In this document: in pieces, positions 12,201-47,741 of the stretch
How the letters are laid out: each line of letters begins with the position of its first letter
How positions within the stretch are numbered: the stretch's first letter is position 1
Source: Oculina patagonica
Taxonomy: Eukaryota
Assembly: GCF_052425735.1 (NCBI RefSeq)
Contig: NC_135761.1
Coordinates: 54,932,001 to 54,996,000, forward strand
Direction of reading: 5' to 3'
DNA: 64,000 bases
Notes under the pieces: model-generated
The model's input: the letters and a program-made list of their open reading frames with translations, nothing else
What the model was told of the DNA's origin: nothing
Database searches by the model: none
Translations under genes and position numbers: made by a program

Positions 12201-15200
12201 AGAATGGAAATCCAGTCCAGTCCGTGTCGATCTTCAAGCAGTGGTAATAAGAGAAATAAGGAGAGTCTTCAAGACGAAATTCATTATCATTCTGCTCCGG
12301 GCCATAAGGATACATGTTGCTCTCGTATGGAGTGGCTTGGAATAAAAAGTTATTAAGATCGAAATCAACATCGCACTTTTTTATAAAGACATTGATAGAG
12401 AATTGTTGACTTCCGCAAGGACAATTATTTTAGTTTATTTCATTACAAACCATGGAAAGCTATAATCAAGAACTGCTTTAGCTATGACGTTCCGCTTGGT
12501 TGTCAGAAATAAATACCAATCAAAGAAGAATTGATCCATTCGTTAATAAAAATGACTTGCATTACTTAAATTTTAATAACTTTTTAACTCAAATCAAAGC
12601 AGCCTTCTATACAGCCTGGTTTTCACTAGCGGCGCAAGCATAAGGTAAGGAAAACAACTATAATTTTACCGTGAATTCGGCTTCGACGCAAGCAAAAGCA
12701 CAAACAAAATGCATTTTGATGCTTATGCTTGATCTTGTCTCAAGCACAAGCACAAAGGTCATTCTATTTTCCTGTTCGCGTGCTTGCCTTTGTGTTTGCC
12801 TTTGTGCTTGCGCTTGTGCTTGCGTCGCTAGTGAAAACCAGGCTTAAATCTCATAAATAGTTTGAAAAACAGAAAGTTACGTAAAGGGAGCCCTTATAAT
12901 CCTGAGTAACTGGATTAAGTACAATAATAGATTCACGGCATTTATATTGACATTATACTGCATCTCGGGCTCTTCATAAAATAATTTAGATCAACAGACA
13001 TGTAAAGGATTGATGATCTTAACACTACTCACTCGTTGGAGTTGGAGCTGTTGTAACTGAAAACAAAGAGAAAAACGTAAAGATCAGGTATGTGGCAGTT
13101 TTAAGAATTATAAGATAAAAATTATAAGATAAGCAGAGTAATGAAAACAGAAGCAACTTACCCGCAGTAGATTGCACAGGATTCATTGTAGCTAAGGTGA
13201 AAAAAAAATGACAACACAAGTCAATATCGTAAGAGAGATAATTACCAGAATGAGCGTAAACAGGATTGTATAATAATATTAATTTTTGCAATTAAAATTA
13301 GTTATTATATAGGTGCTTTGTTCGTTTCCGTTCTTTCGCCATGCAATGCCGTGCCGTGCCATGGCATGCCACGCAATGCCGNNNNNNNNNNNNNNNNNNN
13401 NNNNNNNNNNNNNNNNNNNNNNNNNNNNNNNNNNNNNNNNNNNNNNNNNNNNNNNNNNNNNNNNNNNNNNNNNNNNNNNNNNNNNNNNNNNNNNNNNNNN
13501 NNNNNNNNNNNNNNNNNNNNNNNCCATGCCATGCCAAGCCACGCTAGACTATGCCATGCTANNNNNNNNNNNNNNNNNNNNNNNNNNNNNNNNNNNNNNN
13601 NNNNNNNNNNNNNNNNNNNNNNNNNNNNNNNNNNNNNNNNNNNNNNNNNNNNNNNNNNNNNNNNNNNNNNNNNNNNNNNNNNNNNNNNNNNNNNNNNNNN
13701 NNNNNNNNNNNNNNNNNNNNNNNNNNNNNNNNNNNNNNNNNNNNNNNNNNNNNNNNNNNNNNNNNNNNNNNNNNNNNNNNNNNNNNNNNNNNNNNNNNNN
13801 NNNNNNNNNNNNNNNGGGCTAGGCTAAACTGGGCTGGGCTGGGCTGGGCTGGGCTGGGCTGGGCTGAGCTGGGCTGGGCTGGGCTGGGCTGGGCTGGGCT
13901 GGGCTGGGCTGGGCTGGGCTGGGCTGGCTAGGTTAGGCTAGGTTAGGCTAGGCAAGGCTAGGCTAGGCACTCACTCTGGAGGATGAGTTTTGATTCAAGC
14001 CCAAAACCTCCCAAAGGGTAAAGGTAATTTAATTTATATCAATATATACTTCAAAAAATCCCCCTAAATAACATAAAGCTATAATATTATCTTTTAACAC
14101 AGAATCGATTGCATTGACGAGGGAACTTTGAGGACTTACTTTTTGACGCCGAGATGTTCTGACTCACGGACGGTGAGGTAGTTTCCAATGCACTTGTAGT
14201 CAAGGAACCATTTTTACTGGTCGATGTTGCAGTTACCGAGGAACTTGTAGACAAAGACAGCGTTGAACTTTGGGACTGCGATTCACTTGGACTCACTGAT
14301 GTAGATTGGCTTGAGGACACCGACACGTTTTGGCTGAGACTTGCTGTGGCACTGTGCGATGTAGGTTCCGTTTGGATTGCACTTGTAGACGACGTTGTTG
14401 TGAAAGAACGAGTTGTACTATCGCTCTGTGAGACGAAACTGCTGTCACTTGCCACTTGTGGGCTTGCTGACGACGTTGTCAAAGACGTAGTTGAGCTTTG
14501 GGTCTGTGAGAAGAAGTCGCTTTCACTGACAACTTGTGAGCTTGCTGACGACGTTGTTGTCAGAGACGGAGTTGAGCTTTCGGTCTGTGAGAAGAAATTG
14601 CTCTCACTGACAACTTGTGAGCTTGCTGACGACGTTGTTGTCGTAGACGAAGTTGAGCTTTCGATCTGTGAGAAGAAATTGCTTTCACTGACAACTTGCG
14701 AGCTTGTTGACGACGTTGTTGTCAAAAACGGAGTTGAGCTTTGGGTCTGTGAGACGAAATCGCTCTCACTGGCCACTGGTGAGATTGCTGACGACGTTGT
14801 TGCCAAAGACGGAGTTGAGCTTTGAGTGTGTGAGAAGAAATTGCTTTCACTGACAACTTGTGAGCTTGTTGGCGACGTTGTTGTCAAAAACGGAGTTGAT
14901 CTTTGGGTCTGTGAGAAGGAATCACTCTCACTGGCCACTTGTGTACTTGCCGTCGACGTTGTTGTCGAAGACGGAGTTGAGCTTTGGGTTTGTGAGAAGA
15001 AATTGCTCTCACTTGCCACTTGTGTACTTGACGTCGAAGTTGTTGTCGAAGACGGAGTTGAGCTTTGGGTTTGTGAGAAGAAATTGCTCTCACTGGCCAC
15101 TTGTGAGCTTGCTGACGACGTTGTTGTCAAAAACGGAGTTGAGCTTTCAGTCTGTGAGAAGAAACCGCTCTCACTGGCCACTGGCGAGCTTAACGTCGAC

Positions 15201-18200
15201 GTTGTTGTCGAAGACGGAGTTGAGCTTTGGGTCTGTGAGAAGAAATCGCTCCCACTGGACACCTGCAAACTTGCTGACGACGTTGTTGTAAAAGACGGAG
15301 TTGTGCTTTGTGTCTGTGAAAAGAAGTCACTCTCACTGACAACTTGTCCACTTGTTGACGAACTTGCCGAAAAATTTAGAGGTGGGGTATGGGTCTGCGA
15401 GACGCTCACCGATCCATTAGCTGATTGGCTAGACATACCTGGACTGACTGACGCAGTCTCGATGATTGAAGACAGCTGAGACGCTGAAACAGATAAAAAG
15501 ACAGACTTTGTGAGGTTTTGAACAGTAAAAGGGAGACTGCACTCTCGGAGGTACCATACAGGTGGCTTCTGTAATACGTCATTACCTGCACGAGCGAGAT
15601 TCAAAGGATGTAAATTAAGATATTTAAACCAAACCAAACACGAATCAGGATCATATCAAATACAATTTTGAAACTTTAACTGTTTCGTTAAATTTATCCA
15701 TAAACCGGAACTGCAATAAGTTTGTTTGTTTTTATTGTCTATTTTTCTAAGAATGAACTACGTTCCTTAGGTTCATTTACTTACATGACGTGTAAACAGT
15801 TGAAGTTGCTGTGGTACAAAGGCAATAGCACACAGAGGAACTCAGAGCAGCAGACTGGCTGGATGTAGTGTTCACAGAAGTCGTTGAATTGTACGAGAAG
15901 AGAGATGAAGAGCTGGATGTTACGTTTGCAACAGTCGCTGAATCGTACAGGAATGAAGAACTATATGACCCCTTTGAAGAAGAGCCACAAGGACATACAC
16001 ACATGGAAGAGGCATCAACTATACTGGAAGTAGTTGCTAGAAAGACCACAAACCACATAAAATTATTAATGTTTTACACTGTTCTGCAGAAAGATTATAA
16101 AGAATGCATATCAAGCCTACATGTGTGAATTAGGAATGAACCGAAAAGAATCATTTGGAATAGAATCTTGTATCATCAGCTGATAACACATCAATCTACT
16201 AGACAATTTAAATGCCTAAAAATTGTGTAGTATCGCTATACATGTCTATCTGTATATTTGGACGAGTTTTGATGTATTTTCACAGGCTCGCAGGGCAATA
16301 AATACAAAAAATGGACCCGACATTAGATCGTGCTCGCTTGTTTTTTGTTTCGGTTTTCCACTTACTCCAAAAATATGCCCAAGTATAAAATTGTTGCCTA
16401 AATTATTTGTACCTAAGTAAGCGAAGTTGGATAATAAAAGATAATAAGCTCTACTGGAAATGATAAAATTATGGCACATTAACTTACAGATCAAAGAAGC
16501 AGCCGACGCTGTAGTGCTGCAAGGGCAATAACATACATTGGAACTGCTCGAAGTGGAAGATATTAAGGATGAAGAACTTGGTGAGCTCGTTGTATTAGAC
16601 CCACAAGGACAAATACACATGGAGACAGCATCTGCACTGCTTGAAGAAGTTGCTGAAAATAACAGAACTCGACGTTAATGTTCTCTGCCAGTGAATCTAA
16701 ATATGGGAAAGTTTTCATCCCAAGGATACACAAAATTATTTCACACTTATTGGTAAAAAGCATAAGTATTTTGTAAAAAATAATTTATGATATATAACCC
16801 ATTTTTCTGATCGAAAACCATTTCTATAGTAAATGCAATATGCAGAATTTATTTATAGCTTAAGTTTTTGAGCACTAAGACACAGACATATCGACTCTTG
16901 TGCGTGCAATTTTCCGGCTATCTTGCAGTTGGGTTTAAAATAATTTAAGTCACTGGGTTTAATATGAAGACAAAGCGCATGATTCCACTGGCTCACACCT
17001 TGCCTTGTTCCAAGGGCACAATTTAGCCGCGCAGGAAATTCGTTAGGGTCGCGTAGCTTCCTGTCTTGATCGAACCCCGTACAGGGTCTATCCACACTCT
17101 CACTAAAGAAATATCAGAGTATTGAATAATATCTCTGACGTGTTAATAACGGTATTTATATAGCGCATTTCCATGCGCTTAATGCGCTTTACAACCCTTT
17201 GCGGGGACTTATACCAGAATGCCCTATACAAGTACTTTTTTCTTCAATTTAGTTGGATCTGTCAGATTTTCGTTTAAGGCACAATCAAAACAACTGATGA
17301 ATAAGAAATAACTGAAAGCCAAGACCATTTCTATATCATTCAAATACTTTCAAATAGGGGGAGTGTTGTTTGTTATTAATATTGCATATTACTTTGGTTT
17401 CTTTCCAGCTTTTTGAAATGCATTTTCGTTAAAACACACGCAAGTTGAAACATAATTTCGAACCCATCAGAGCGTTAACAATTTGCATTTAAATGATGGG
17501 GCATTTTATTACGTTTAGGCGACTCTGTCAGGGTCAAGTTCAGCTGATAATTTCTGGAGGCCGGGCTTTTCCACTAGGGACGCTTTAATTTCCATATCAT
17601 CACAATAAGAAAGACAAAAGCTGACAGGACTGTCTATGAATTTAAAACTGATGATAAATTGAAGAGCAGTATTAGCGAAGTCCGGTCAGGGTTAAGTACA
17701 AGCAGCAACGATTTATGGGGCTATTGACTGCTATTGGGTTCTTTGGATAATATGTGCTTTTGCTTCGTTTGCATTACAGTAGAGACTAAACTGAACGGTT
17801 GGCCAATTCTGTCTGTAATTTTTGACGGTGATAAACAACGACCAATTGCATACAAAATTAGCCTAGAAATGTTTCTTTAACGACCTATAACCGACATCTG
17901 ACGTTAGACAAATTAATAATAAATCTATCTTCTCTACGATCATACATTTGGCAGATGGTGATTGTACGTTTTTGCTCTCGTAATTGTCCAAAACTAGAAA
18001 AAATCTTGACGGTAAGACTTTTTTCTATCAAGACTGGGTTGATAAGGGTGCCCTTACTTTGCAAGATGTCATTGATAACAACGGCAGATATTTGCCATTT
18101 GAACAGTTTAAACAACGATATGGAATACAGTGCAACTTTCTTCAATACTTCCAAGTAATATCCGAATTGAAATACTCAAAAGCTTTATATAATTAATAAA

Positions 18201-21200
18201 GCAAAATATAAGAAGAGTTGGTAAGGTAAATGATGAGATGAAGCTAGGAAACATCTAATTAAAGCTACATCACTTATATCTCGAATGTTTCTGCAAAAAA
18301 AATTATAATACAATACTGGAATAGTTGCAAAAGTTCTGTGTCGCTCTGCAGTCACTAAATGATATAACAAGAAAGCAAACATTACTGCTGAAGTTATCAC
18401 AGTGAAATGTTTCTTAAATAACACGATACACGAAAACAAGTCAAACACAACCGTATTACGCACAACTGTAGTTTCCATTTTCCCACCCATGAGTTGAAGT
18501 ACGACTGTTTGAGTGTGTCGAGTACAACGATGAAGGTCTTTTTGAGCTAAGACACCTTCGAAACGTTTGCCGTTAAAGTATGAATGTCAAAAGTGCTAAA
18601 GGAAGGCAAATATGACTTACCCTGGACAAAACCAAGAAGTAGAAACACAAAATAAACTGTCCACATACTGTTGTTGAGGGACATCATTCACTTTGACGTA
18701 TTGTTTAATTTCGATTTCTTTAGGACATTATTATATCAGTTGTGCATGGATGGTCATATTCAGTGGGGCGTGATGCCTTTAGACAAAATTATGCGTCTAC
18801 TGTTTTATGCATCTTGGCTTCGTTGGATGAGCACTTAATCAGATAATTTACTTTTTTTCCTGAAACACGAAGGGACATGTCGCAGCGACATTTAGCAGGG
18901 ACAAAATCAAAACATGTTCATACACAAGAAAATGTAGCATGGGCGCGACGTGTTGCAGCGACACGTGCCCTCGTGTGTGGCAATACATTCCCGGAGGGTG
19001 TGCGCTGCAAAATGGCCCTTCTACGCTTTCTCCTGTTTGTTTATGCAATGATTTCGGCAAAGCAACAACATGTCATTGCAACATGTCCTTTCTCGTCTTA
19101 ATTGAGACGAGCGTCACTGAGACGCAGGTGCACCTTAGAAACAACTTGCCAGGTTTCATCCAGGCAGATTAAAGAGTCCCATTTTCCAGACGATGACACA
19201 TTTAAAATTTTCACCAGCAGGTTGACCAAAATCGGCTAATTTGTTGTTAAGCTTCAATAAGTTTCCCTTTTCACCGAAAACAATTATCAATGCAAAATCG
19301 TTGAATTATCGAGTTGTTTGTTAAGACTCATATCCGTACTACGACTTTAGTTCCTGATGCTTTTAAGCTATAAAATACTTTTATTCACTCTGTGATCCTA
19401 GAATTGAGAGATGTACTTTATTGAACTATTAACGATAATAACTAAACAAAGAGAAGAGTTTGCTAGAAACACGGTAGCAACCGACCGCTTTATCATTAAA
19501 ACAGTAATTGTTTTTTTTTTTTAGTTTAGATAGCAATCTCTTCCATAGATGATATTGGCCTAGGTATTGAATAGATTCAGTGGCCTTTCCACTTCACAGC
19601 ATGATATAAAAACCCTTAATTTTTCAGCATGTAGTTTATGTTAAATCTTTGACGTCTACATTCTGCCTGCACTAAGTTCCAAAAAATAAGAATACCTGAC
19701 CACCTATTTAAAGCTGGACTGATTTCTAATTTGTAAGTTTTCCCCTGCTCGTTTTTTAACCTTATAACTTTATCCCACTCTTGCATTTCCTTAACCTTTG
19801 TTTTGGTTTGTTTGCATGGTTACCTTGGTGACAGTTTCAAACATGTAATTAAATGAGTTAGAAAGCTTGACCAAATACACCAACCATCATGAAAAAATCA
19901 ATTAATTCATGCCACATTTCCAGTCAGTCCCTTTCTCTTTTTTTTAAAAAAAAAAATCACTGTAATTTGATTCAAGTAAATACATTGCCTTTAATAAACC
20001 AACATGGAGGCGGCTAATGTTATTACGTTTCGACAAATCTGTCAGAGTCAACTTGAGCTGATAATTCATGGAGGCTGGGCTTTGCCAAAAGAGACGCTTT
20101 GATTTCCATTTCAACAAAATAAGGAGGACAAAGGAAGACAGGTCTATCTATGAATTTAGAACTGATGATAATGGGAAATGGATTATTAGTGAAGTATGGG
20201 TCAGGGTTAAGTACAATGCAAACATACACGATTTATGGGCTGAAGGCCGGGCTTTGCCAAAAGGGCCCCCTTGATTTCCATTTCAATAAAATAAGGAGGA
20301 CAAACGCTGACAGGTCTGTCTATGAATTTAGAACTGATGATAAATGAAGGAAGAGTATAAGTGAAGTATATGTCAGGGTTAAGTACAAGTAGCCATGATT
20401 TATGGGCCATTGGGTTACTTGGGTAATGTGTGCTTTTGCTTCGTTTGCATTACAGTAGTGATTAAACTGAAAGGTTAGCCGACTCTGTCTGTAACCGTTG
20501 ACGGTGATACACAACGATCAATCGCATAAACTATTAGCATAGAAATGTTTTTATAACCGAGGTTTCACATTATTTAAATCAATAATAAATCTAACTTCTT
20601 TCCAATCATACTTGCCTAACCTCATTATACGTTTTGCTCTTGTAATTTTCCAAAACATAGCAAAATAAGAGTCTAGAACTGGAGTTATGTTGGCCAACAA
20701 GACGGTAATTTTTAATGTTTCGTTATGTTTCAATATTTGCAGAACATTCAGTCATATTGTTACTACTTCAGTCGCTGTATTTACTCCGTGACTCTGGAAT
20801 GAAGAATTGAGATCCCAAAAGATATTCAAGTAAATGAACACAGCATGGGTAACAGAGTTTGACAGAAAAGAGGCAGAATTATAGGCATAACACATCATAA
20901 TTACTGGTATATTTTTCATTAGCGATATTGCACCCTTTCCACCTCACAGGACGTGATACAATAACTCTTGATTAATCACCCTGCGGCTGCTGTCAGAAGT
21001 CTGGATCTTGCCGCACCCGAATTACTTCCAAAACTAGGGATGTCTGACCGCACAGTCCACTGCGATATGCTTTCTAAGATTTTTGTGTACGTTTCTACTC
21101 TTTTTTTTCTCTGTTTTTCGTCTAATTGAAAACAATTATCAGTCTAAGGTTAACAAAGATCACTGGTAATCATTGTTAACTGCGGCCGCCATTCTTTGCA

Positions 21201-24200
21201 GCTTTTTCTTTTACACACCTTTCTGTTGTGCTGACAATGCGTATTAGTACATCAGTTTTGCCTTATGAATGGCCCTCTTTATACCAGTGACACATGTTTC
21301 TGCTGTTGATTAAGCTATTAAGTTTAAAATAAAAACAACCAACAGCAAATAGATCGTCTTCACGCATAATCTGATCCATGTGGCTTCCTCTTTAAATATA
21401 TTAATTCTATCCATCTTGCGCTGTTCTTTATACTGAGACGCATACGAGTTCTTCTTGACTGATTATACGTATTACCATAGTCACTACTAACTGTGGTATT
21501 ACAGTAATAGAACGCTTCAACCACAACCAAAAACGATTATCAATTCAAGATTAAAAAGGATCATGCGAAACCTTTAAGAAATATTGAGTTGTTTATTAAG
21601 ATTCACGTCTAAACCAGACAATTTGAGTTGTTATTACTTTGAGACTTTAACTGTATGCAGCCGCCAAAGCCACCAAACATTCTTTGCAGGTTTCGTTCTG
21701 ACACAATATATACACTAGCTATCTGATGTGCTGACAATGTGTCGGAGCAACTAACATTCTTGATAAAAGCGTAAAATACAATAAAAAAGCTTCATATTCG
21801 TTGGATCTTACACCTGAATTGACTGGCTTTGCTTGGAAAGAAGTAGATTTTCCGAGTGGTCTGCGATAACGAAAAACCTCACTCCACAACCTACACCAAG
21901 CTTGCTCATGCCCAGAGCCCAAAACATTTCCACGAAATCCTAAAAAAAGACACTTTTCTGAACATGTCGACATGCACGACTTCTCTTCAAACATTTCCTT
22001 GTTATACAAATATAGGGTTTCTTTTACGGATATTTGTACAATAGAATTGAAATGATATCCACAATATCGATTGGAGGAAGAGACTATTTCCCGGTACGCT
22101 CATGGTTACACTATTTATTTTTCACTTGAACAAAAACACTTGAAGTAATGTAATTAAAACAGCTTTCGCGTAAACAAAATACGTAATATAAAAGCTTTAT
22201 ATAATTAATAAAGCAAAATATAAGAAGAGTTGGTAAGGTAAATGATGATGAGATGAAGTTAGGAAACATCTGTGAAAGCTACGTCACTTATATCTCGAAG
22301 TTTCTGCAAAAAAAATTAATACAATACTGGAATAGTTGCAAAAGTTCTGTGTCGCTGCAGCCACTGAATGATATAACAAGAAAGAAACATTATTGCTGAA
22401 GATATCACATGTGAAATGTTTGTTAAATAACACAACACACGAAAACAAGTCAAACACGCACAACTGTAGTTTTCATTTTTTACATTCATGAGTGAATGAG
22501 TTCGAGCGCGACTGCGTGCATGTGTCGAGTATAACGGTTAAGGTCCTTTTGAGCTAAGAAGCCTTCAAAACGTTTGCCGTTAAAGTATGAATCTCAAAAG
22601 GTGCTAAAGAAAGGCAAATATGACTTACCCTGGACGAAACCAAGAAGTAGAAACACGAAATAAACTGTCCACATACTGTTGTAGAGGGACATCACTTTAA
22701 CGTGTTGTTTAATTTCGATTTCTTTGGGACATTATTAAATCAGTTGGGCATGGATGGTCCTGGATATTCAGTGGGGCGTGATGCCTTTAGACAAAATTAT
22801 GCGTCTACTGTTTTATGCCCCTTGGCTTCTTTGGGGGAGCACTTAATCAGATAATGTGCCTTTTAATCCTGAAACACGAAGGGACATGTCGCAGCGACAT
22901 ATTTCAGGGACAAAATCACAACATGTTCATACACAAGAAAATGTAGCATGCACGTGTTGCAGCGACACGAGCCCTCGTGTGTGCTAATACATTTCAGGGG
23001 GCTTGCGGCTGCAACATGCCCCTGCTACATCTTCTTGTGTGTGTTTATGTAGTAACTTTGTCGCAACAACATGTCGCTGCAACATGTACTTTCGCCAAAT
23101 CCGTCTTTTTCTCATCTTACTTGAGGCGAAAGTCATTGAGACTCATAACGAGGTGCACTAAAAAAAAAACTTCAGGTTTCATCCAGGCGGACAAAGGTTC
23201 CGATTGTCCAAATGATGTCACATTAATTTTCAACAGCAGGTTGACAAAAATCGGCTTAGTTGTTGTTAAGCTTCTATCAGTTTCCCTTTTCACCGAAAAC
23301 TAGTTGGAAATCGTTGAAATATTGAGTTGTTTATTGAAAACTCATATCCTTATCTTTTCTATACGACTTCAGTTGCTGATGCTCTAAAGCTCTAAATACC
23401 AGTATTTACTCCGTGATCCTGGTATGAAGACATACACTTCATTGAAATCGTAAAGATAAAAACTAAACAAATAGAAGAGTTTGCTAGAATAATGGTAGAC
23501 CAACCCGCTTTATAACTAACCGTAATTGTTTTTTTACTTAAGATAGAATCTTTAATTGACGATATTGGCCTACAGTGTGGATATTGAATAGATTCAGTGA
23601 CCTTTCCACTTCACAACCTGATGTAATAACCCTTAATTTATCAACATGCGGTTTTTGTTAAATCTTTGACGTCAGTATTCTGCTGCACCAAGTTCCAAAA
23701 ATAAGAACTCTGCCCATGTTTGTCTGGGGGAATAATAGTTAAAGCGCGACTGATTTTTGAGAATTTTTGCGTACCTTTTTTCCTGCTCTCTTTTTAACCT
23801 TATAGACTATCTTTATTTCACTCTCACATTTCCGTAGCCATGTTTTGATGTGTTTTCATGGTTACCTTGGCAACAGTTTCAAAACATGTAATTAAACGAG
23901 TTAGAAGGCTTGAATTGACGGAGTAACCCAACCGTCATGATAAAGGGCCATTAATTCGTGCCACGTTTCCTGTCAGTCCCGTTCTTTAGAAAAAGATCAC
24001 TGTGACTTGATGGAGTAAATCATTGCCATATTTAATTACCTTCTGCCATATTGTGTGTTTCCAATGTAAACTTATTGTACCTATAACTTTTTGTTCACTT
24101 TTTTCGATTTCCACTTCATTAAAGCCTAATTATGCTTTAAACATATAGGTTATTTAATTTAATGTCTTAGCTCTGTTCTACTCTGCCACTGATTTTGTAA

Positions 24201-27200
24201 TTTCTTTGTAGTGGCAAAATAAATGAACTTGAAAACTTGCAACTTGAAATACTTTTGCATTTTTTGCATTAACAACCGAAAGCAATTATCAGTCCAAATA
24301 GTACTGAAAATATACACAATTTTCTAACCTGCTGACAGTGCATCTGAGCAGCTCAGCTGATTTTTGATGAAAGACAATTCCACAAAAGCCTGACGATTGA
24401 TGGTGCCATAAAACTTTCTGGCTTGGCTTGGAAAGAAGGAGATTTTGCCGAACATGCCGACTTGATCTCGCCTCAGTTTGAATACACAGTATTCCCGGCC
24501 ATGGAAATAAAAATGTTGCTTTCCGAAGCGGGCTTTTAAAAAAGAATGTTTTATGTAGGATTCACACTAAACCAAAAATGACTAAGAAAAATTCGACAGC
24601 TTTTCAGTATAACTACTATATCAAACCGGGTAAGAGTTTATATAGTAAATTATGGGGCGCTGGTGAAAGCTTTCTCTTTAAATCGAAAACGTAGCTGGCA
24701 AAATATCTAATCTATCAATCCCACATCCTTTCTCATATGCACCTAACTAAGAGTTACTAGTTAAGTTCCTTGTGTCGCTTATTGTTACTGAATATTGCAA
24801 CAACAAATTAAATTAAACGTTACTGCTGGAGCTATTACTGGTGGAATGTTGCTAAGTAACACGAAAACAAGTAAAAAAAAGTCAAACACGACGATTAGGA
24901 TCAACTACAACTTTCATTTTTCCATCCATGAATTCAAGCACGACTGCTTGCATGTTTCGAGTGCAACGGTCAAAGTCCTTGGAAAAAATACCTTGATCAT
25001 GTTTGCCGTTTGAGTACGAAGGCGAAAAAATTTATAAAGGAAGACAAATGTTACTTACCCTGGATGAAAACAGGAAGTAGAAACACAAAATAAACTGCCC
25101 GCATAATGCTGTAGAAGGACATTACTTTGGCTTGTTGTTTAATTTCTATTTTTTTGTTCATTATTAAATCAGTGTTGCATGAGTGGTCCTCTTCAGTGAT
25201 GCATAATCTGTTCAGATGAATCATCTGCTGTTGTATTAGTCTTGGCTTTCGGGCGCACTAAGCCCTTTTTTTTTAGTAAAATAACAGAGTCTACTTGGGG
25301 TATACAGAGCTGAGGTATATTTATTTATTACATTTAACATAAATTTCAAAATAGCTGGTAACAAGATTCCATGCTAATTGGCTATGAAATTCTGAGAAAC
25401 CAGGAACACAGTAGTTGAAAGGTCGTTTTCTTCGAAAGATTTAAGAGTGTTTCGAGAGTGTCATTCATGATCAGCTCTCAGACATTCAAGTTCACCAGAA
25501 ATAACTATTTTTTAATCAACTAGCACGTACATCTGAAAGCAATCCTTTTAATTTAACGACTAGGCAAAAAACATAAACAGTTTTCTAACAATTAAGTATA
25601 AGTAAAAAGGGAAACTGATTGAAGGTTATACACGAGCAAGTTAGCGACCCAGCTTTATTTGGGTCTGCAGTTTGATTATTAAAAATGTATGTGACAGGGA
25701 ATGCAGGCGATGAAAAAAACTGAGTTAAGAATATTCTGGATGAACTCAGGGATATGTTTTAAATAATGCACCTGGTTATAAAAATAAAAAGAAGAGAAGA
25801 AGATTATGCATCAAGACGAACTATGTGATTTGGAACGTAGCTTTAAGAGACCACTGCGGAGTATCTTGAGGGCGAGTATTTTAGCAACCGTATTTATTCA
25901 GGCGTCGCGTTTTGGTCAACTGCATGAGAACAGCACAGTCACTTGTACTGACATTCTGTTACGAAAAACAGACGCGTCTATTTTTTAGAACGTGCAGGAT
26001 TAAGTTCACTTGTACACATTTTATGTAGTTATCTACCATACAGAATACCGTCATTGTGGTGCTCTTGGCAGCACCCAGTCTAAGTTAGTGTGCCTTCTCT
26101 TCAGCCTGAAGCCGGTGAAAACCGATTTACAGCCTTCAAGTAAGTAACGAGTAGTTTACAACACGACAAGAACTTAAACTTAAAGTTATAATTGATGCAA
26201 TGATAATGAATAATACAAAAACGGGAAACGATCTCTCTTGAGTGAAACAGAACGCTGTTTGAGTACGAGCGTAAAATATTTTAGAGAAAGACTTACTTAC
26301 ATTACTTATCCTGGAAGAAAACAAGGAGTAGGAAAACAACGCCAACCGCTCGTTTTATGTCGAGTGACATTACTGCGCCGCGTTTTTTAGCTATCTGTGC
26401 AAACTTCTAACATCAACACGTTTTTCCAATTCGCGGAAAAATATCCTCTTTATTTTGGTCCACCTGACGTCATGCTATCGGGCAGAGTTGACACGAGCAA
26501 CAAACTTTACTGAGAACTTGAAAGCTTTATATAATAAACATATCAATCGTATGAACAGTTGATAATGCGTTTGCGGCTTCAAGACCAAACATGCCAACCA
26601 AAGCATCTTATCACAGCTACATCGAAATCTCGAAAGTTTCAGCGCCTCCTGGGATACGAAATCTTGGCTTGTGCAAAAAGCGCTTTCAGGTAACACTATT
26701 TGAGTTTCAAAACAACAGGAAAATGATTTTAGTATTGTGCAACAAATAAAGGACCACTTTAACTGAAAATAACGGCTTATAAAACGGGAGTAAAGAATCT
26801 TGTTCAAAACGGTTTACTACAATTTTTCTTATGAAGTTATCTGCCAAAATCTTGAACCGTATTCCGTAGACAATCATTTTCATTTAAAAAAAACGTCGCT
26901 TCTCTCACGTGCGCCTTTGATTCTGCCATAAGCACAAAGAATCATTTAAATCATCTTTTAAATTTTAGCTTTGCACAATAATTTTGGCTTTAGGTGTCAG
27001 GTTGGCTAAACAAAAATATTCCACGGTTATTTTAGCAACGTTTCAGGCAACATGTTACAAAACAAACTTATTATTAAAAGAAAAGGAATCATTATCGTCG
27101 TTTTAAAAATTTCAAGTCACGCCCATCGTCAAAGTACAAAGTACGCAATAAATCGAATTATTTATAGCTAAGGTAAAACAAACATTACAAAAAGCTATCT

Positions 27201-30200
27201 CATACTTATTCTTTAAGCAATAGACCGCGCTTTCTAGGGCTTTACTGGCGTAATAAAACCACGCGGGATGTTGGGAGAACACGAGAAAAGCTTGTAAATC
27301 TCGAGCCGCAGAGTGATTTACAAGCTTTTCGAGTGTTCTCCCAACATCCAAAGTGGTTTTATTACGCCAGTAAAGCCCTAGAAAGTGCGGTTTATTGCTT
27401 TTATGAAATTACTATAGAAAACTTTCGTCAAAGACATAGGAATCTATTTTATTTTTCGTGATCAAATGTCTTATTCTCAACAAGTTCATCGGATGACGCG
27501 GTAAACCAATCACAGCGGCTGAAAGAATAAAACACAGGTTCAGCTCCGCACACAAAACCCACGGATCGACGAGCAAAAACGTTCAAAAGTTGTCTTAAAG
27601 CTATAAAAGTCTTAAGAAAGGAAAGGAAAAATGCAAACTGACATAGTACGAAATGTATTCAACGATTCTTTGTTCTTTGACGTGGAAAACTAGCAAATTG
27701 TGGCCGGAGTCATTCATCGCGAAAGTGTGAGAGACTGCACGAAAACTTTGCAAGATTACAAACTTCGCAGACTGACGAAGGTATTGAGAATAAAGGTTAG
27801 TTTCACAAACTCTGCTTTAGAAATTTGTTATGATTTTATTTATTCCGTATTCTTTCGTTTTCGCCGAATAACAGACTTGGCAGAAAGCACTGAAAGCATA
27901 TAAAACTAAAATTATAATTCAAGCGCGAGGACTCAGCGTAAGTTTCTGCCATCAAAATAATTCAAGTAAGCTTTCATTGCGACCAATTTGATGCAGTTTT
28001 AATTCCTTTCAAATAACATTTCCGAGTAAATGTTGATTGGAACGATATCCATGTTTTTAATATTTTCCAGTCCGATAAAAGCCGACCTGTTTATAATGTT
28101 TCTTCTCATATGTTTTTCTCCGCGTTTTCGTTTTTTTTCTCTAGTTACTTCGCTCCATATGTGGCGAGTGGGAAAATTTGTTTTTGTGATCCACCCTCAG
28201 TAAATTTTCACATTGAGAACCATATTCTCCGTTTTAACAATCAGATAGACCAAAAGAAGATATTAAACTAACGTTAATTCTTCGTCCTTATGGCTTATGC
28301 GTAATCGAGCGCAGTGCGACCATGTCGGCACGGAAGCGGGAGTTTACCGGTACAATAGTACATAGGTTTTTTGAACAATTTGACCAATCAGAGCGCGCGT
28401 AGTATCTGAGTTATTTTATAAAATCCGATAAAGTTCTGAAAAGCATAGGAGTTCATCTTGTTAGATGTAAACAGGAAATTCCACAGCAAACTGGGGGAGC
28501 TGTATTACAAAGACATTTTAACTAAATTACGTAATTGCAAGAAGAGAAACAAATATTTGCCGGAATTTTTACTGAATCACAAATTATTATCTGTAGATGT
28601 GGTCAATAAAGTATAAAAAATTTGACGTAAGATGCGAAACAAAATTAAAAGTGAGCTGGACTGCGAAGACGATATGGACATGCCCAAAGAATTTAATATA
28701 AACACGAACAATTAAAATTGATCACTTTATCTTTGTACTAAGTTGCATGATTCATAAACAACGGAGAACAACATACCGGGAGATGGAGACACACTGCTGG
28801 ATGAAAACACGCTGAAACTGCTGCTGCTTGAGCTTGAAGGAACACTGAAACTGCTGCTGCTTGAGCTTGAAGGTAAACTGTAACTGCTGCTGCTTGAGCT
28901 TGAAGGAACACTGAAACTGCTGCTGCTGCTTGAGCTTGAAGTCAGACTGAAACTGCTGCTGCTTGAGCTTGAAGGCAAACTGTTACTGCTGCTGCTGCTT
29001 GAGCTTGAAGGTAGACTAAAACTGCTGCTGCTTGAACTTGAAGACACACTGAAACTGCTGCTGCTTGAGCTTGAAGACACACTGTAACTGCTGCTGCTTA
29101 AGCTTGAAGATAGACTGAAACTGCTGCTGCTTGAGCTTGAAGGTAGACTGAAACTGCTGCTGCTTGAGCTTGGAGACAAACTGAAACTGCTGCTGCTTGA
29201 GCTTGAAGGCAAACTGTAACTGCTGCTGCTTGAGCTTGAAGGAACACTGAAACTGTTGCTGCTTGAGCTTGAAGACACACTGAAGCTGCTGCTGCTTGAG
29301 CTTGAAGATACACTGAAACTGCTGCTGCTTGAGCTTGGAGACAAACCGAAACTGCTGCTGCTTGAGCTTGAAGTCAAACTGAAACTGCTACTAATTGAGC
29401 TTGAAGGAAGACTGAAACTGCTGCTGCTTGAGCTTGGAGACAAACTGAAACTGCTGCTGCTTGAGCTTGAAGGTACACTGAAACTGCTGCTGCTTGAGCT
29501 CGAAGGCAAACTGTAACTGCTAATGCTTGAGCTTGAAGGCAAACTATAACTGCTGCTGTTTGAGCTTGAAGACAAACTGTAACTGCTGCTGCCTGAGCTT
29601 GAAGGTGAAATGAAACTGCCGCTGCTTGAGCTTGAAGGAACACTGTAACTGCTAATGCTTGAGCTTGAAGGCAAACTGTAACTGCTAATGCTTGAGCTTG
29701 AAGGCAAACTATAACTGCTGCTGCTTGAGCTTGAAGGCAAACTGGAACTGCTGCTGCTTGAGCTTGAAGGTGAACTGAAACTGCCGCTGCTTGAGCTTGA
29801 AGGAACACTGTAACTGCTAATGCTTGAGCTTGAAGGTAAACTGTAACTGCTGCTGCTTGTACTTGGACACACACATAAACTGCTACTGCTTGAGCTTGAA
29901 GGCAAATTATAACTGCTGCTGCTTGAGCTTGAAGGCAAACTGTAACTGCTGCTGCTTGAGCTTGAAGGTAAACTGTAACTGCTGCTGCTTGAGCTTGAAG
30001 GCAAATTATAACTGCTGCTGCTTGAGCTTGAAGGTAAACTGTAACTGCTGCTGCTTGAGCTTGAAGGTAAACTGAAACTGCTGCTGCTTGAACTTGAAGG
30101 CAAACTGAAACTGCTGCTGCTTGTACTTGGACACACACATAAACCGCTACTGCTTGAGCTTGAAGGTAAACTGTAACTGCTGCTGCTTGAGCTTGAAAGC

Positions 30201-33200
30201 AAACTGTAACTGCTGCTGCTTGAACTTGAAGGCAAACTGTAACTGCTGCTGCTTGAGCTTGAAGGCAAACTGAAACTGCTGCTGCTTGAACTTGGACACA
30301 CACATAAACTGCTACTGCTTGAGCTTGAAGAAAAACTGAAACTGCGGCTGCTTGAACTTGAAGGCAGACTGAAACTGCTACTGCTTGAACTTGGACACAC
30401 ACATAAATTGTTGCTGCTTGAAGTTGGAGAAACACTGAAACTGCTGCTGCTCGAAGTTGGGGACACACTGAAACTGCTACTGCTTGAGCTTGGACACACA
30501 CATAAACTGCTGCTGCTTGAACTTGAAGGCAGACTGAAACTGCTACTGCTTGAACTTGGACACACACATAAACTGCTGCTGCTTGAAGTTGGAGACACAC
30601 TAAAACTGCTGCTGCTTGAACTTGAAGGTAAACTGAAACTGCTACTGCTTGAGCTTAAAGGCAGACTGAAACTGCTACTGCTTGAGCTCGGACAGACACA
30701 TAAACTGCTGCTGCTCGAAGTTGGGGACACACTGAAACTGCCGCTGCTTGAACTTGACGACACACTGTAACTACTACTGCTTGAACTTGGAGACACACTG
30801 AAACTGCTACTGCTTGAACTTGGACACACACATAAGCTGCTGCTGATTGAGCTTGGAGACACACTAAAACTGCTGCTGCTCGAAGTTGGGGACACACTAT
30901 AACTGCTGCTGCTTGAACTTGTAGGCACACTGTAACTGCTACTGCTTGAACTTGGACACAGACATAAACTGCTTCTGCTTGAACTTTGGAACACACTGAA
31001 ACTACTGCTGCTTGAGCTTGAAGACAAACTGAAACTGCTGCTGCTTGAACTTGGTGACAAACTGAAACTGCTACTGCTTGAACTTGGACACACACATAAA
31101 CTGCTACTGGGTGAACTTGCAGACACACTGAAACTGCTGCTGCTTGAGCTTGAAGACCAACTGTAACTGCTACTGCTTGATCTTGAGGAATGACTGAAAC
31201 TGCTACTGCTTGAAGTTGGAGACACACTGGAACTGCTACTGCTTGAGCTTGGAGACCAACTGTAACTGCTACTGCTTGAACTTGAGGAGTGACTGAAACT
31301 GCTACTGCTTAAACTTGTAGACGGACTGAAACTGCTACTGCTTGAAGTTGGAGACACACTGGAACTGCTACTGCTTGAGCTTGGAGACCAACTGTAACTG
31401 CTACTGCTTGAACTTGAGGAGTGACTGAAACTGCTACTGCTTAAACTTGTAGACGGACTGAAACTGCTACTGCTTGAAGTTGGAGACACACTGGAACTGC
31501 TACTGCTTGAGCTTGGAGACCAACTGTAACTGCTACTGCTTGAACTTGAGGAGTGACTGAAACTGCTACTGCTTAAACTTGTAGACGGACTGAAACTGCT
31601 ACTGCTTGAAGTTGGAGACACACTGAAACTGCTACTGCTTGAACTTGGACACAAACATAAACTGCTACTGCTTGTGCTGGAAGACAAACTGAAACTGCTG
31701 CTGCTTGAACTTGGAGATAAACTTAAACTGCTGCTGCTGCTGCTTGAACTTGGACACACACATAAACTGCTGCACTGTAGAGCTGTGGAGCAAAGGTTTC
31801 TCTCCAGTTATACATTGACCGAAAACTTGACTGCTATGCTAGTTGTTTTTCATTTCTGGTATTTCGGGGTACGACTTTAAATTTGAATGGGTTGCTGTAG
31901 TGTTTTAGTTTGTTATTAACAACGCCCAGAGAGCGTTTAAGATTGTCGTGGTCTAAAGCGATAATTTTACACATCCCCTTTACAAGGACTACGCGTACCG
32001 TGACTTGCCCTCCATCTGGTTGTAGTTTATGCAGTCCCATGTAAACTGACCCCAAATGTTTCCACGCACAACTCAGGGTAACTTAGACATTGTTTAAACA
32101 ATCGGCCTCATAAATTCTGTGTCCATGTATTTCGTTTTTAATTCGTATTTTGATTGCAATAAAATCATTTTTGAACATTTTAATCCGATTGATAAACAGC
32201 AACTATTTGGAAGTTCGAGTTAAATATATAAATTCTGGCTGCTTACATTCGTCAAGTGCTCTCGTCAGCTGAGGGGCAATCGAGAAAAGTGACTAAAACA
32301 TTGTCTTTGAAAAGCAGTCAAGTCATAAAAATAATTCTAAATGCTGTCAATGTCGAGTAAATGACAAAAAAAAAACAATAACAAGCCAATGATTCGCCTC
32401 TCCAGTTGATCAACCCAGATAACTAATTAGATAACTAATTTAATCCATCAGACTCGTATTCTTTGTTTCACTACCTTTTGTACTACTAATGTTAAACGAA
32501 CAAATAAAAGGGAAGCACGGAAATGAGAAAAAACAAAATCTTTGTCGCTGACAGACCGAAGGCATCACGCCTGTGATGATCAACGAGCCGACAGTCGCAC
32601 CGAGTGACCCACCGAGCAAATTGGAATCCACAATCGATTGAAAATAACCGCCGAAAAGACGAAAGCACGGGTGAGAAGGGAGCGCGTGGCGCGCGCGGAC
32701 GAACAAACCGACAAACGGGCCCCAAACGCAAAGACGCAAATGTGCAAGAACGAAGTGTGAAAAGCAAAATGGTGAGTGGAGGGCCACGCCCCAGCGCGAC
32801 GAGGGACGGCACCCCGGGGGAGCCAAGATCCAGGGACGGACGGGGGGCCAAATTGGGGGAACCAAGATCACTGCGACACCGCATTCTTAATATAAACACG
32901 CTATGGCCATACGTATTCTTACAACAGTTACGGTGGTTAGCGTGGATAAATAATCAATTTTTCCTTTGTATTTTGGTGACAGTAGGGAAACTCCTTTGCG
33001 AACGTATATTATTCGATTCATTCAAGAAACAAATTGAAATTTGCCTCAAATAAAGTTTGGTTGTTTACATCAGTGCATTGCGAGCATTTGTGAACATTTC
33101 AACGAGTTATATTAGGCTTGACTAATAAACTGACAATCAATTTTGAGTCTGTTTTCTTGATCTTTTTTTAAATACTGAGCAGATTTTAGAATGTTGCGTT

Positions 33201-34254
33201 GTCTATGAACAGGTCCATTTAATTCGGCCTATTGAAGTTGTTTCGACTTATATAACAAGAGCTGCCATTCGTGTGAACCGTTAGTCTTGCCACAATATGC
33301 ATGGTTCAAGTAATTAGCTGGTTATTGTTTTCTTCTTTATTTTTTAATTAATCCATTTTCACTGCGCAATATATAATCCACCCATACCCTTTCTTTTGGT
33401 AGACCTTTGGAAAGTAATGAAATATTCAGTGCAAGGTTGCAATGTGTTAAACATGCTTACAGGATTACTAATTACTTATCGGTCGACATAATACTTATGA
33501 TGTTTATCAAAGAACTGCGTTGTTGTGAATCGCTTCTTTGTGACGTTATGTGCCTTAAGAAAAATACTGTGGTAGCCGGTAGTCTTTATAGCAACAGTCA
33601 GTGTTAATCAGGAATCAACAACCTATTCCAACTTGAAGCGGGTAATGAGCGGTTTTTATTTTCTACGCCATATAAGATTAATTACATTGTTAGCAACAAG
33701 CGGCACGCCAATCATTAGGAGATCAGTTGCACAAATACATGTTCACTGCCATTCGTGAGATTTCGTTAAAGCGATTTCTGTTAAGCATTACTCTAGCAAC
33801 ATACTAAACGAATGTAGAGTTGATATGGTGAGTTATAACCGCCATAACATGAAATGTCTCTTATTCTTATAAGACCAATCATAACCAAAGCGGTAAATAG
33901 AACGTTAGAATAGCTGCTCTTGCATAAATAGATGAAAGCACTACCAAGTCTCAAAGTCACTGCCTAAGCTCATATATAAATCGGTTTTTAACAAATTATG
34001 TAACAATTAAGAAATCAAACATTGATGTCAAACGCGACATACCGCAGTTCGTATTTTTGTTTTAACATCACAAATTGTTAGCAGTGTTTATCTCGAACTT
34101 TCTATTTCGTGAAAAATGCTGTGACACAATGCCATATATATGACCATGGTTGAAAAACAAAAATGCTTAAAGAAGGAAAATATCGCTTACCTTGGAAGAA
34201 ACTAGCGAGTAGAAGCACAAACCAAGCTGTGCCAATATTGTTGTGGAGGGACAT
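156..34254 (-). CDS. MUC4-like / mucin-like protein (signal peptide, Ser-rich mucin region, NIDO, AMOP, VWD, EGF repeats), multi-exon, 3' end outside the window
   Basis: Manually joined GT-AG exons with consistent phases: a 64-nt leader (e.g. 34191-34254 or 18621-18684), [28777-31782], 16488-16652, 15785-16036, 14140-15483, 13162-13191, 13033-13056, 12175-12335, 11355-11729, 10632-10732, 10038-10130, 8460-9040, 7941-8162, 7188-7526, 6506-6760, 5829-6022, 4266-4602, 3528-3659, 2801-2923, 2203-2325, 1872-2000, 954-1082, 156-265. In-window length is 1761 codons without, or 2763 with, the large exon. Motifs: IAPFW and NTFQAVIITDG (NIDO), QECCY..GSL..GPPDGG (AMOP), WGDPH and GLLGTWNDDPDDDF (VWD), DIDEC (Ca-binding EGF). 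Confidence 0.9.
954..3659 (-). CDS. Five phase-1 EGF-domain exons (3528-3659, 2801-2923, 2203-2325, 1872-2000, 954-1082)
   Basis: Each is 123-132 nt with six-Cys EGF spacing; four begin D(I/V)(D/N)EC; canonical splice sites. Confidence 0.9.
1272..1798. mobile_element. Tc1/mariner-type MITE
   Basis: TIR CAGTCGAAGCTCTC...GAGAGCTTCGACTG flanked by TA; internal CGTAAGCGG subrepeats. Confidence 0.85.
3926..4200 (+). mobile_element. tRNA-derived SINE
   Basis: A box TGGCCGAGTGG, B-box-like GGTTCAAGAC, non-tRNA body, AT-rich (TTTTTA)n tail. Confidence 0.75.
4266..4602 (-). CDS. Exon encoding the end of a cadherin-like/beta segment and two EGF-like modules
   Basis: FVATDDKGASA..CACDHGGQC..CACQGGYTGRFCDSDIDAC..CGPCPSGYTGNGAQC; cag|TTC acceptor and G|GTGAG donor. 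Confidence 0.9.
5829..8162 (-). CDS. VWD domain and following exons (7941-8162, 7188-7526, 6506-6760, 5829-6022)
   Basis: WFWGDPHIKTLDNGNYTFNGLGEY; KGLLGTWNDDPDDDF; CGDDHECLFD; NFPPKI. Confidence 0.9.
8460..9040 (-). CDS. End of NIDO plus AMOP domain exon
   Basis: ACPCTMWQAWLDWGRF, QECCYST, YKYCC, YRPSDDCSRYIPP; canonical splice sites. Confidence 0.9.
9141..9355 (+). mobile_element. Solo LTR
   Basis: TGTAG...CTACA ends, 4-bp TSD TATG on both sides, internal TATAA and ATTAAA. Confidence 0.75.
10038..12335 (-). CDS. NIDO-region exons (12175-12335, 11355-11729, 10632-10732, 10038-10130)
   Basis: MYPYG..GFPFF..LY|ICRNGLI..IAPFWATTD..WVLVVTW..|SNTFQAVIITDG..AGWNAGD. Confidence 0.9.
11047..11336. 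repeat. Interspersed repeat; further copies at about 40297-40565 and 46890-47178
   Basis: Shared GTGTTTCATC..GAGTTGAAAAT..GATGAAACACTGTCTC..ATGAGTTTGAGAA. Confidence 0.8.
12613..12844. mobile_element. MITE, PIF/Harbinger-like
   Basis: TIR AGCCTGGTTTTCACTAGCG...CGCTAGTGAAAACCAGGCT. Confidence 0.8.
13033..13191 (-). CDS. Two phase-1 microexons (30 nt at 13162-13191; 24 nt at 13033-13056), Thr/Pro linker
   Basis: ccttag|CT..GCG G|GTAAG and ttttcag|TT..ACG A|GTGAG; both lengths are multiples of 3. Confidence 0.65.
13335..13968. repeat. Pentanucleotide microsatellites (GCCAT)n, (GGGCT)n, (AGGCT)n spanning two N gaps
   Basis: Directly visible. Confidence 0.95.
14140..15483 (-). CDS. Ser/Thr-rich mucin exon with about 11 tandem 28-aa (84-bp) repeats
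   Basis: Unit such as SSASSQVASESNFFSQTQSSTPSSTTTS; tttcag|CG acceptor, A|GTAAG donor; 1344 nt, phase 1-1. Confidence 0.88.
15785..16036 (-). CDS. Ser-rich exon with MCVCPC and VCYCLC Cys clusters
   Basis: ttctag|CA acceptor, T|GTAAG donor; 252 nt, phase 1-1. Confidence 0.85.
16488..16652 (-). CDS. Ser-rich exon with MCICPC and VCYCPC Cys clusters (paralog of 15785-16036)
   Basis: ttttcag|CA acceptor, T|GTAAG donor; 165 nt, phase 1-1. Confidence 0.85.
17995..18172 (+). mobile_element. Non-LTR retrotransposon ORF2 fragment (Tx1/L1-like)
   Basis: FYQDWVDKGALTLQDVIDNNGRYLPFEQFKQRYGIQCNFLQYFQVIS resembles the region C-terminal to the RT domain. Confidence 0.6.
18621..18684 (-). CDS. Signal-peptide first exon, copy 1 (MSLNNSMWTVYFVFLLLGFVQ)
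   Basis: ATG...CAG G|GTAAG, 64 nt, hydrophobic core. Confidence 0.8.
22629..22692 (-). CDS. Signal-peptide first exon, copy 2 (MSLYNSMWTVYFVFLLLGFVQ)
   Basis: ATG...CAG G|GTAAG, 64 nt. Confidence 0.75.
25059..25122 (-). CDS. Signal-peptide first exon, copy 3 (MSFYSIMRAVYFVFLLPVFIQ)
   Basis: ATG...CAG G|GTAAG, 64 nt. Confidence 0.7.
26310..26370 (-). pseudogene. Signal-peptide exon, copy 4 (MSLDIKRAVGVVFLLLVFFQ), donor mutated
   Basis: 61 nt, homologous to the other copies, but ends CAG G|ATAAGT (GT to AT); read-through hits TAA two codons later. Confidence 0.6.
27210..28422. mobile_element. Interspersed element with a terminal hairpin of about 185 bp (27217-27400)
   Basis: GCAATAGACCGCGCTTTCTAGGGCTTTACTGGCG inverted to CGCCAGTAAAGCCCTAGAAAGTGCGGTTTATTGC; right boundary approximate. 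Confidence 0.55.
28777..31782 (-). CDS. Large 1002-codon poly-Ser exon built from 33-bp (11-aa) repeats with 12 LC(V/L)CP motifs
   Basis: Uninterrupted ORF; ccacag|CT CTA CAG TGC acceptor, CCC G|GTATGT donor; 3006 nt, phase 1-1. Confidence 0.85.
34191..34254 (-). CDS. Signal-peptide first exon, copy 5 (MSLHNNIGTAWFVLLLASFFQ)
   Basis: ATG...CAA G|GTAAG, 64 nt; nearest leader upstream of the large exon. Confidence 0.8.
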
Positions 34255-47337: not shown

Positions 47338-47741
47338 CTGGAGAGCAGCATTTTTTTTTTCTCCCGGAACGTTTTTCCATACATTGACCCCAAAATTGAA
47401 TGTCTTACTAGTAGTTTTTTCAATTCTGGCATTTCAGGTATAAATTTACAGGGTCTACTTGAACTGTGGCTTATCCACAATAATACAATTCAGCCTCCGC
47501 CTGGTTGTTGTTTACGCAGTCCCGTGTAAACCCAAATTCTTCCACAATTTAAGTAAAAATTGGACCCTGTTTAAATATTCGGCTCAATAGATTCTAATAA
47601 TAATAATAATAATAGATAGTTTATTCATATTTCTACATGACAGTCTAAAACTGAATTGCGTAAAAATTTACAAAGAGATAAATTATTAAAAATACAACTG
47701 TTAAAATCTATTATAGCTACATTAAAAATTTGCCATAGAGG

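Follow-up and report, generated by a model that had tools for sequence, protein, structure and literature searches.

The window analysed here, a stretch of 64,000 nucleotides (nt) with about 37% GC and of eukaryotic character, is identical to positions 54,932,001-54,996,000 of the Oculina patagonica chromosome record CM126638.1 (GCA_052425735.1), window position x corresponding to position 54,932,000 + x of that record. Its minus strand, on which all the exons and signals discussed below are located, carries a MUC4-like gene with NIDO, VWD (on two exons), C8-3_MUC4 and EGF-type domains (Pfam). Upstream of the exons encoding these domains lie nine copies of a short leader exon and, among these copies, a giant exon made of tandem repeats that encode mostly serine. 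The relationship of this giant exon to the leaders on one side and to the MUC4-like gene on the other is the subject of this report.

The giant exon occupies positions 28777-31782 (3006 nt, phase 1-1) and consists of 91 units of 33 nt, with LC(V/L)CP motifs as punctuation. It is entered at ...ctccacag|CTCTACAG (31782) and left at TCTCCCG|GTATGT (28777), and its serine frame runs without a stop from 31807 to a TAA at 28729-28727; these splice sequences and the stop-free frame confirmed the coordinates and phases that a preliminary description of this DNA had proposed. The other two sense frames contain 8 and 46 stops. Tandem Repeats Finder (TRF) reported 88.6 copies of the 33-nt unit at 83% identity. 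The codon register is kept over the 91 units, the only insertions or deletions being two events of +3, and a recent threefold higher-order copy can be recognised. The exon encodes 680 Ser (68%), 72 Pro, 60 Leu, 49 Phe and 25 Cys, and no Asp, Glu or Lys.

Since a repeat array could be open by composition alone, we evaluated the block with a null model in which the observed number of substitutions of each unit was set at random positions, with the observed base spectrum. The statistics reported here were computed on the 65 distinct units, and the test was also run on all 83 units. No stop was observed in the array against 6.2 expected (P 0.002), the synonymous fraction was 0.305 against 0.232 expected (P 0.003), and replacements to charged residues were 3 out of 173, while 12.6% were expected (P<0.0003). 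Compared with a neutral repeat array, the block lacks stops, is rich in synonymous changes and avoids charge, which indicates that it is coding and under selection at the protein level. The 3006-nt block is thus a genuine protein-coding exon, selected to stay uncharged, and the explanation as a noncoding minisatellite, open through composition, was rejected by the same tests.

Concerning homology, the LC(V/L)CP punctuation resembles the SMC(I/V)CPCG and VCYCPC motifs of exons 2-3 of the MUC4-like gene, and motifs similar to CxCP are found also in the N-terminus of the Stylophora homolog P0119. A search with the giant exon gave no match at E<=1e-5 among proteins of 560-1780 amino acids (aa), a result in which the composition filters of HMMER probably mask any match, and no poly-Ser module of this kind was present in the coral mucin-like homologs that were compared.

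The leader exon, 64 nt from ATG to donor, encodes only a signal peptide of 21 residues ending in ..Q, and an Ala is created at the junction. As the preliminary description had stated, four copies (L1-L4) are located downstream and five (L5-L9) upstream of the giant exon, which therefore lies inside the leader array, and the copies fall into two subfamilies (VYFVFLL..V/IQ versus A(W/C)FV..AGFFQ). All nine copies that it had counted are present, but L4 and L6 are dead and L8 is doubtful. In the proximal subfamily, L1 (18621-18684) encodes MSLNNSMWTVYFVFLLLGFVQ and has the donor AGG|GTAAGT, L2 (22629-22692) is 95% identical to L1, with flanks at 86%, and L3 (25059-25122) is the copy nearest to the leader of a paralog located 11 Mb away (P0189). 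L4 (26310-26370) is decayed, the GT of its donor having become AT with an in-frame TAA after it. On the distal side, L5 (34191-34254) encodes MSLHNNIGTAWFVLLLASFFQ, has the donor AAG|GTAAGC and is the upstream first exon closest to the giant exon, while L7 (43213-43276) and L9 (52679-52742) are intact members of the distal subfamily. L6 (39645-39709) is frameshifted, being 65 nt long, and probably dead; its exon is 78% identical to that of L5, no higher than the flanks. L8 (45141-45204) is a 91-95% copy of the L6 unit, with an intact frame and a Gln in the hydrophobic core. In the intact leaders (L1-L3, L5, L7 and L9) the exon is better conserved than the sequence around it: between L5 and L7 or L9 the identity is 89-91%, with flanks at 62-79%, and between L1 and L3 it is 84%, with flanks at 58-75%.

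A promoter-like motif, CATGC..ACTGAT(T/A)TAAT, was found 59-64 nt before the ATG in L1-L3, L7 and L9, at -77 in L5 (as CATGCGAGACTGATAAAT) and at -103 in L6 and L8, while L4 has none; the distal cassettes contain in addition a CCAAT-like box. The same motif precedes both cassettes of the paralog, which are of the proximal type, the GenBank model of the paralog starting with MSLYNSMRAIYFVFLLPAFIQ. Because motif and leader type recur in front of a gene 11 Mb away, the promoter-plus-signal-peptide cassettes are, as judged from these sequences, a feature of the family, with a predicted promoter function. Splice sites were scored with position weight matrices (PWMs), for which the paralog and exons 2-4 supplied 25 true donors and as many true acceptors. 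Eight leaders have donors scoring 10.3-12.5, the GT being lost in L4, and the scan revealed no acceptor in front of the leader ATGs. We also considered the ends of the distal leaders as recursive splice sites and rejected them, their acceptor scores being -0.9 to 1.4 except in the dead L6. Two peculiarities of L5 can be added: an upstream open reading frame (ORF) of three codons (ATG AAG AAG TAA, 34263-34274) ends 6 nt ahead of the main ATG, and a poly(A) run, absent from the other cassettes, lies between the promoter-like motif and the ATG.

The donor of the giant exon, CCG|GTATGT (28768-28779, last exon base 28777), has a PWM score of 6.9, inside the training range of 5.7-10.7. It is the only GT scoring at least 6.9 in the 3-kb ORF, where the whole window has one such site per 914 nt, and it is placed at the end of the array in phase 1, which is the phase needed by exon 2; the chance of finding an in-phase donor this good within the last 80 nt is roughly 2-3%. 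Inside the array, nine LCVCP codon blocks (TTA TGT GTG TGT; 29875-31762) form the weak donor-like sequence TAT|GTGTGT (PWM 5.5), and since each of these blocks lies in phase 1, an array-internal cryptic splice to exon 2 would keep the frame. The acceptor region of the giant exon (31783-31802, ...cctttgctccacag|) is homologous to two relic acceptors of the distal array. Among the acceptors located past 28777, 12 (strong or sampled ones) were translated, and only 16652, the acceptor of exon 2, keeps the frame open, the others reaching a stop within 4-50 codons.

Reading through the 28777 donor adds a tail of 16 codons (GMLFSVVYESCNLVQR; 28727-28776) before the TAA at 28729-28727, exactly the end that the preliminary description had given; an element that it did not contain is a poly(A)-signal-like hexamer, ATTAAA, at 28692-28697, 30 nt past the TAA. 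The in-frame stop comes 48 nt after the donor and the hexamer 30 nt further, which is the layout of a composite terminal exon, with its signals within 85 nt. It should be noted that the minus strand has an AATAAA or ATTAAA every 477 nt on average, that is about 0.2 times by chance within 100 nt, so that ATTAAA gives weak support for a terminal exon. A 1.2-kb repeat (27209-28424), 82% identical to a non-syntenic stretch of the paralog locus (L002:41002-42156), starts about 300 nt beyond the read-through stop and holds the strongest acceptor-like site of the interval, 27518 (12.4). The 28-mers across the 28777/16652 junction had no exact match in the metagenome and transcriptome contigs of the Joint Genome Institute (JGI), where the control junction between exon 2 and exon 3 was likewise absent.

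The history of the array was followed by comparing the window with itself. L1 and L2 belong to a 4-kb tandem duplication, while L6/L8 (91%) and L7/L9 (85%) form a duplicated super-unit of two leaders; the idea that L4 completes a triplicated super-unit with L6 and L8 was rejected, as L4 shows no significant similarity outside the exon. The acceptor of the giant exon has two copies. One is located downstream of L7 (40600-40724, acceptor at 40724), has a PWM score of -5.2 and is followed by an ORF of 39 codons; the other is located downstream of L9 (47190-47337, acceptor at 47337), scores -3.6 and is followed by 48 codons. Both lack a usable polypyrimidine tract, and the two short ORFs are not conserved in frame. 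Since acceptor copies follow both L7 and L9, the ancestral distal unit can be reconstructed as a leader, a 2.4-kb intron and an exon, of which the live exon is kept only in the L5 unit. The tail and the downstream flank of the giant exon showed no homology to the relic units, and neither the 69-aa product predicted for L9 plus its relic nor two ORFs of the window had an exact database record. A retroelement-like insertion (47600-50900, with ORFs at 48118-48756, 48884-49333 and 50612-50908) separates the L9 leader from its relic acceptor. Between L5 and L6, inverted repeats of 267 nt with 96% identity (35319-35585 and 36684-36948) enclose about 1.1 kb; this pair is probably a terminal-inverted-repeat transposon, and microsatellites of the (GGCGGAT)n type are present at both of its inner ends.

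The gene that follows the array was mapped using the GenBank model of the paralog (23 exons) as a guide, and exons 5-22 could be placed with canonical splice sites. Exon 2 (16488-16652, phase 1-1) encodes ATSSSSADAVSMCICPCG...VCYCPCS..., and its acceptor, with a PWM score of 12.6, is the first strong in-frame acceptor past the giant exon. Exon 3 (15785-16036, phase 1-1) is a second Ser-rich module, bounded by CxCPC, and exon 4 (14140-15483, phase 1-1) is a Ser/Thr-rich mucin exon in which 12 repeats of 81 nt (27 aa, ..SSQVVSESNFFSQTQSSTPS..) extend over 14388-15361. The array of exon 4 is a second, more conventional mucin-type array within the MUC4-like gene, and exons 2-4 supply a smaller Ser/Thr-rich region regardless of the giant exon. 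A micro-exon of 30 nt (13162-13191, TTMNPVQSTA), with canonical AG/GT sites, is conserved with the annotated exon 4 of the paralog. Between exon 4 and the micro-exon, at 13382-13968, two runs of N are bordered by simple repeats, (CTGGG)n and (GGCTA)n; a (PAQPS)n frame is open on the minus strand at 13562-13927 and continues into the masked stretch, so that an extra low-complexity exon may exist there.

The body proper (156-13191) comprises the micro-exon and 16 further exons, with NIDO, AMOP-like, VWD, C8-3_MUC4 and EGF regions. NIDO (PF06119, 11313-11729) was detected with E 2e-14 and 54 bits against a cut-off of 25, while the AMOP-like region (PF03782) reached 16.7 bits, under its cut-off of 25; this exon is, however, 82% identical to the matching part of the O. 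patagonica mucin-like protein. VWD (PF00094) was detected on two exons with 29 and 32 bits (cut-off 22.9) and is followed by C8-3_MUC4 (PF23263, 58 bits); matches to EGF_CA, cEGF and FXa_inhibition were also found. The last three exons lie beyond window position 1. They were read from L004, a locus of CM126638.1 whose positions 1-3105 correspond to window positions 3105-1 at 100%; the transmembrane (TM) segment, WKWIAIGVSIGVVVIIIIIVIVFWW, is encoded by an exon just past the window edge (L004:4371-4742), the last exon being 39 codons long. Against the O. patagonica 'mucin-like protein' P0111 the gene showed about 80% identity across 19 exon-sized pieces (tblastn). The identity was also about 80% to XP_078368612.1/KAL9978281.1 of the same species and 55-60% to proteins of Pocillopora, Montipora, Porites and Acropora.

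We read the giant exon, with a confidence that stays slightly below even, as the mucin-domain exon of a MUC4-like membrane mucin, whose long form would come from distal starts and whose short form would come from proximal ones. Intact leaders with a promoter-like motif, consensus donors and no acceptors mean that a transcript started at a distal position could read leader, giant exon and exon 2. Specifically, transcription from the distal cassette L5, possibly also from L7 or L9, would provide the signal peptide of 21 residues; a phase-1 splice (34191 to 31782) would join this leader to the poly-Ser exon, and the GTATGT donor at 28777 would then be joined to exon 2 (16652) across a 12-kb intron, in which the proximal cassettes, having no acceptor, would be contained. 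The product, of about 2956 aa, would consist of the signal peptide, an uncharged Ser brush of 1002 aa, the CxCPC and Ser/Thr-rich exons and the NIDO-AMOP-VWD-EGF-TM part. The proximal cassettes L1-L3 start downstream of the giant exon and would yield only a brush-less form of about 1954 aa.

Because of their position, proximal starts cannot include the giant exon; what the preliminary description had said of L1-L4 on this point holds, while its short form of 1761 aa in the window has to be corrected to 1753 aa (1954 aa in all) by the exon map, from which also the 2956 aa of the long form, if spliced, are taken. The geometry of a promoter switch is sound; the exon with its coding constraint, the splice-site sequences, the cassettes and the gene body are observed, while the firing of the promoters and the two splices, from 34191 to 31782 and from 28777 to 16652, are our inference. 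The long form from distal leaders that had been suggested is supported by the coding nature of the exon, by the in-phase donor, by exon 2 as the one translated acceptor that keeps the frame, by the CxCP motif found also in exons 2-3 and by intact leaders devoid of acceptors; the weak acceptor at 31782 and the dead leaders L4 and L6 speak against it.

Several observations weigh against the long form. With a score of 3.5 the acceptor at 31782 falls short of every one of the 25 training acceptors, the weakest of which reaches 4.4, and ranks at the 89th percentile among the AG sites, and an acceptor at 32268 is stronger, though unproductive; as a productive acceptor the latter was rejected, since a stop follows after 5 codons. 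About 40 acceptor-like sites scoring at least 5.6 are found between 28777 and 16652. Two of the nine leaders are dead, and the ATTAAA after the read-through stop is compatible with a terminal exon. At the paralog locus both the distal array and the giant exon are missing, the upstream neighbour of the paralog being 2.7 kb off. The L5, L7 and L9 units look like copies of a leader with a short exon, and since both other copies of the exon are dead and without a donor, the distal units possibly descend from a small gene of two exons. A public gene table lists, next to ACROYT_G016818, a product of 3061 aa with the range L004:1-28682 (28.7 kb; overlapping window positions 1-3105 and with them the last exons of the window gene), 105 aa above the predicted long form, a difference that the masked low-complexity stretch could cover. 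This model has no Pfam match on record, its range crosses the next two genes, and it was not returned by a search expected to find MUC4 bodies of 1089-3465 aa; it is a lead only and may be unrelated to the window gene.

A serious alternative, although in our opinion a less probable one, is that L5 and the giant exon form a two-exon gene of their own. Such a gene would encode a secreted, uncharged, poly-Ser and Cys-punctuated protein of about 1040 aa ending at the TAA at 28727, with polyadenylation after the ATTAAA at 28697-28692 or a short 3' exon nearby, and would merely precede the MUC4-like gene, which would start from first exons of its own, L1-L3. The stop 16 codons past the array with the hexamer 30 nt on would fit this arrangement, and so would the L7 and L9 units, where a relic acceptor and a short stop-ended ORF without a donor suggest an ancestor made of a leader plus one exon. 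Distal and proximal leaders are, moreover, separate subfamilies, the annotated model of the paralog uses the proximal type only and the paralog lacks the distal array, while the acceptors nearer than exon 2 (e.g. 27518, score 12.4) end the frame within 4-50 codons. However, a separate gene leaves to chance, at roughly 2-3%, the good donor in the phase of exon 2 at the end of the array. The hexamer is weak evidence, given its expectation of about 0.2 within 100 nt, and the CxCP motif is common to the array and exons 2-3. No matching protein of 560-1780 aa was found, although the composition filters of HMMER make this result uninformative.

A compromise between the two, which we regard as improbable, is a composite exon in which the 28777 donor competes with the ATTAAA site, so that the distal promoters would give either a secreted poly-Ser protein or a long membrane mucin; both signals do lie within 85 nt of each other, but this model is indistinguishable from either simple one and requires that two weakly supported signals be functional. 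Equally improbable, in the light of the selection tests, is an unused or recently dead exon, that is a minisatellite-expanded relic spliced into no messenger RNA, all functional transcripts coming from L1-L3: the weak acceptor, the two clearly dead sister acceptors, the decay or doubtful state of three of the nine leaders and the fact that no annotated protein with the giant exon was found agree with it, but it is opposed by the three independent marks that selection on the protein has left in the 65 distinct units, by the higher-order copies as a sign of ongoing in-frame homogenisation and by the conservation of L5 above its flanks.

Returning to the promoter-switch interpretation, we propose, still more tentatively than the assignment of the exon itself, that promoter position might act as a hard-wired switch. 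Distal starts would give a poly-Ser brush mucin, perhaps in competition with a poly(A)-released brush, and the cassettes in the intron a bare, receptor-like form.

In human MUC4 the tandem-repeat domain is located in exon 2, and the variant MUC4/Y is without it (PMC4902942). The coral gene has the C-terminal architecture of human and other vertebrate MUC4, the sialomucin complex with its variants MUC4/Y and MUC4/X (NIDO, a sub-threshold AMOP-like region, VWD, C8-3_MUC4, EGF, TM), and its predicted long form would match also the human exon order, with a signal-peptide exon, one giant tandem-repeat exon and the body. The repeat of MUC4 is a Thr/Ser/Pro-rich 16-mer; the coral repeat is different, with 11 residues, 68% Ser, almost no Thr, no charge and Cys pairs. 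A membrane mucin with its repeat domain is a barrier and an anti-adhesive brush, whereas without it a signalling ectodomain is left, and in mammals exon skipping decides between the two. Unlike MUC4/Y, which arises by exon skipping, the repeat-less coral form would come from internal promoters with their own signal-peptide exons. If the proposed reading is true, the MUC4 layout of signal exon, giant repeat exon and NIDO-AMOP-VWD body is present in a coral, and the outcome MUC4 versus MUC4/Y is reached there via the transcription start site and not via exon skipping. It would be a simple case of isoform control born of tandem first-exon duplication, and a variation on the known isoform logic of mucins more than a novel type of system.

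Tandem first exons bearing an ATG, a promoter-like motif and a strong donor but no acceptor, placed upstream of shared exons, are an arrangement resembling that of clustered protocadherins and UGT1A. The variable exons here differ in encoding only a cleavable signal peptide, and would therefore diversify regulation and not the protein. One large, constitutive-looking exon within the coral array is a further difference, since we know of no large constitutive exon inside the clustered protocadherin and UGT1A arrays. A donor with an in-frame stop and a poly(A)-like hexamer in the next 85 nt recalls the switch between secreted and membrane immunoglobulin mu, a resemblance of layout only.

Coral mucin4-like proteins are components of the skeletal organic matrix, and an Acropora skeletal organic matrix protein (SOMP) carries N-terminal TSP1 domains (PMC4890752). 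By sequence the window gene belongs to the same family as these coral mucin4-like proteins and those annotated as 'mucin-like protein' in many corals, the Acropora SOMP having its TSP1 domains instead of a poly-Ser module of this kind. With 68% Ser, selection against charge and spaced Cys pairs, this module is a candidate component of the coral surface mucus or of the calcifying matrix.

As regards related loci, the searches with the giant exon, the MUC4 body and exon 4 did not return the own protein of the window gene, nor one derived from a transcript, and with exon 4 only the neighbouring chimeric gene (P0188) was returned. At the locus of the Stylophora ortholog (L003) no leader could be recognised, in a sequence with 7 kb of N directly upstream. 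The next gene downstream (L004:10001-18682; KAL9979193.1/XP_078363782.1, 653/647 aa) is a chimera: KAL9979193.1 joins an N-terminus of Delta/Serrate type (MNNL, DSL) to a Ser/Thr-rich exon, which shares 69% identity with part of exon 4, and to C-terminal juxtamembrane, TM and tail exons of the mucin-like family. Both in this gene and in the paralog a Ser/Thr-rich exon comes straight after the phase-1 leader, an arrangement that agrees with the proposed long form. A third MUC4-like gene, from L004:22745, has a product of 1421 aa (NIDO/VWD/C8-3) and a related leader of 67 nt, MSHEKSMKTAVCLVFLFSVFCQ, in phase 1, so that the window gene is at the head of a tandem cluster.

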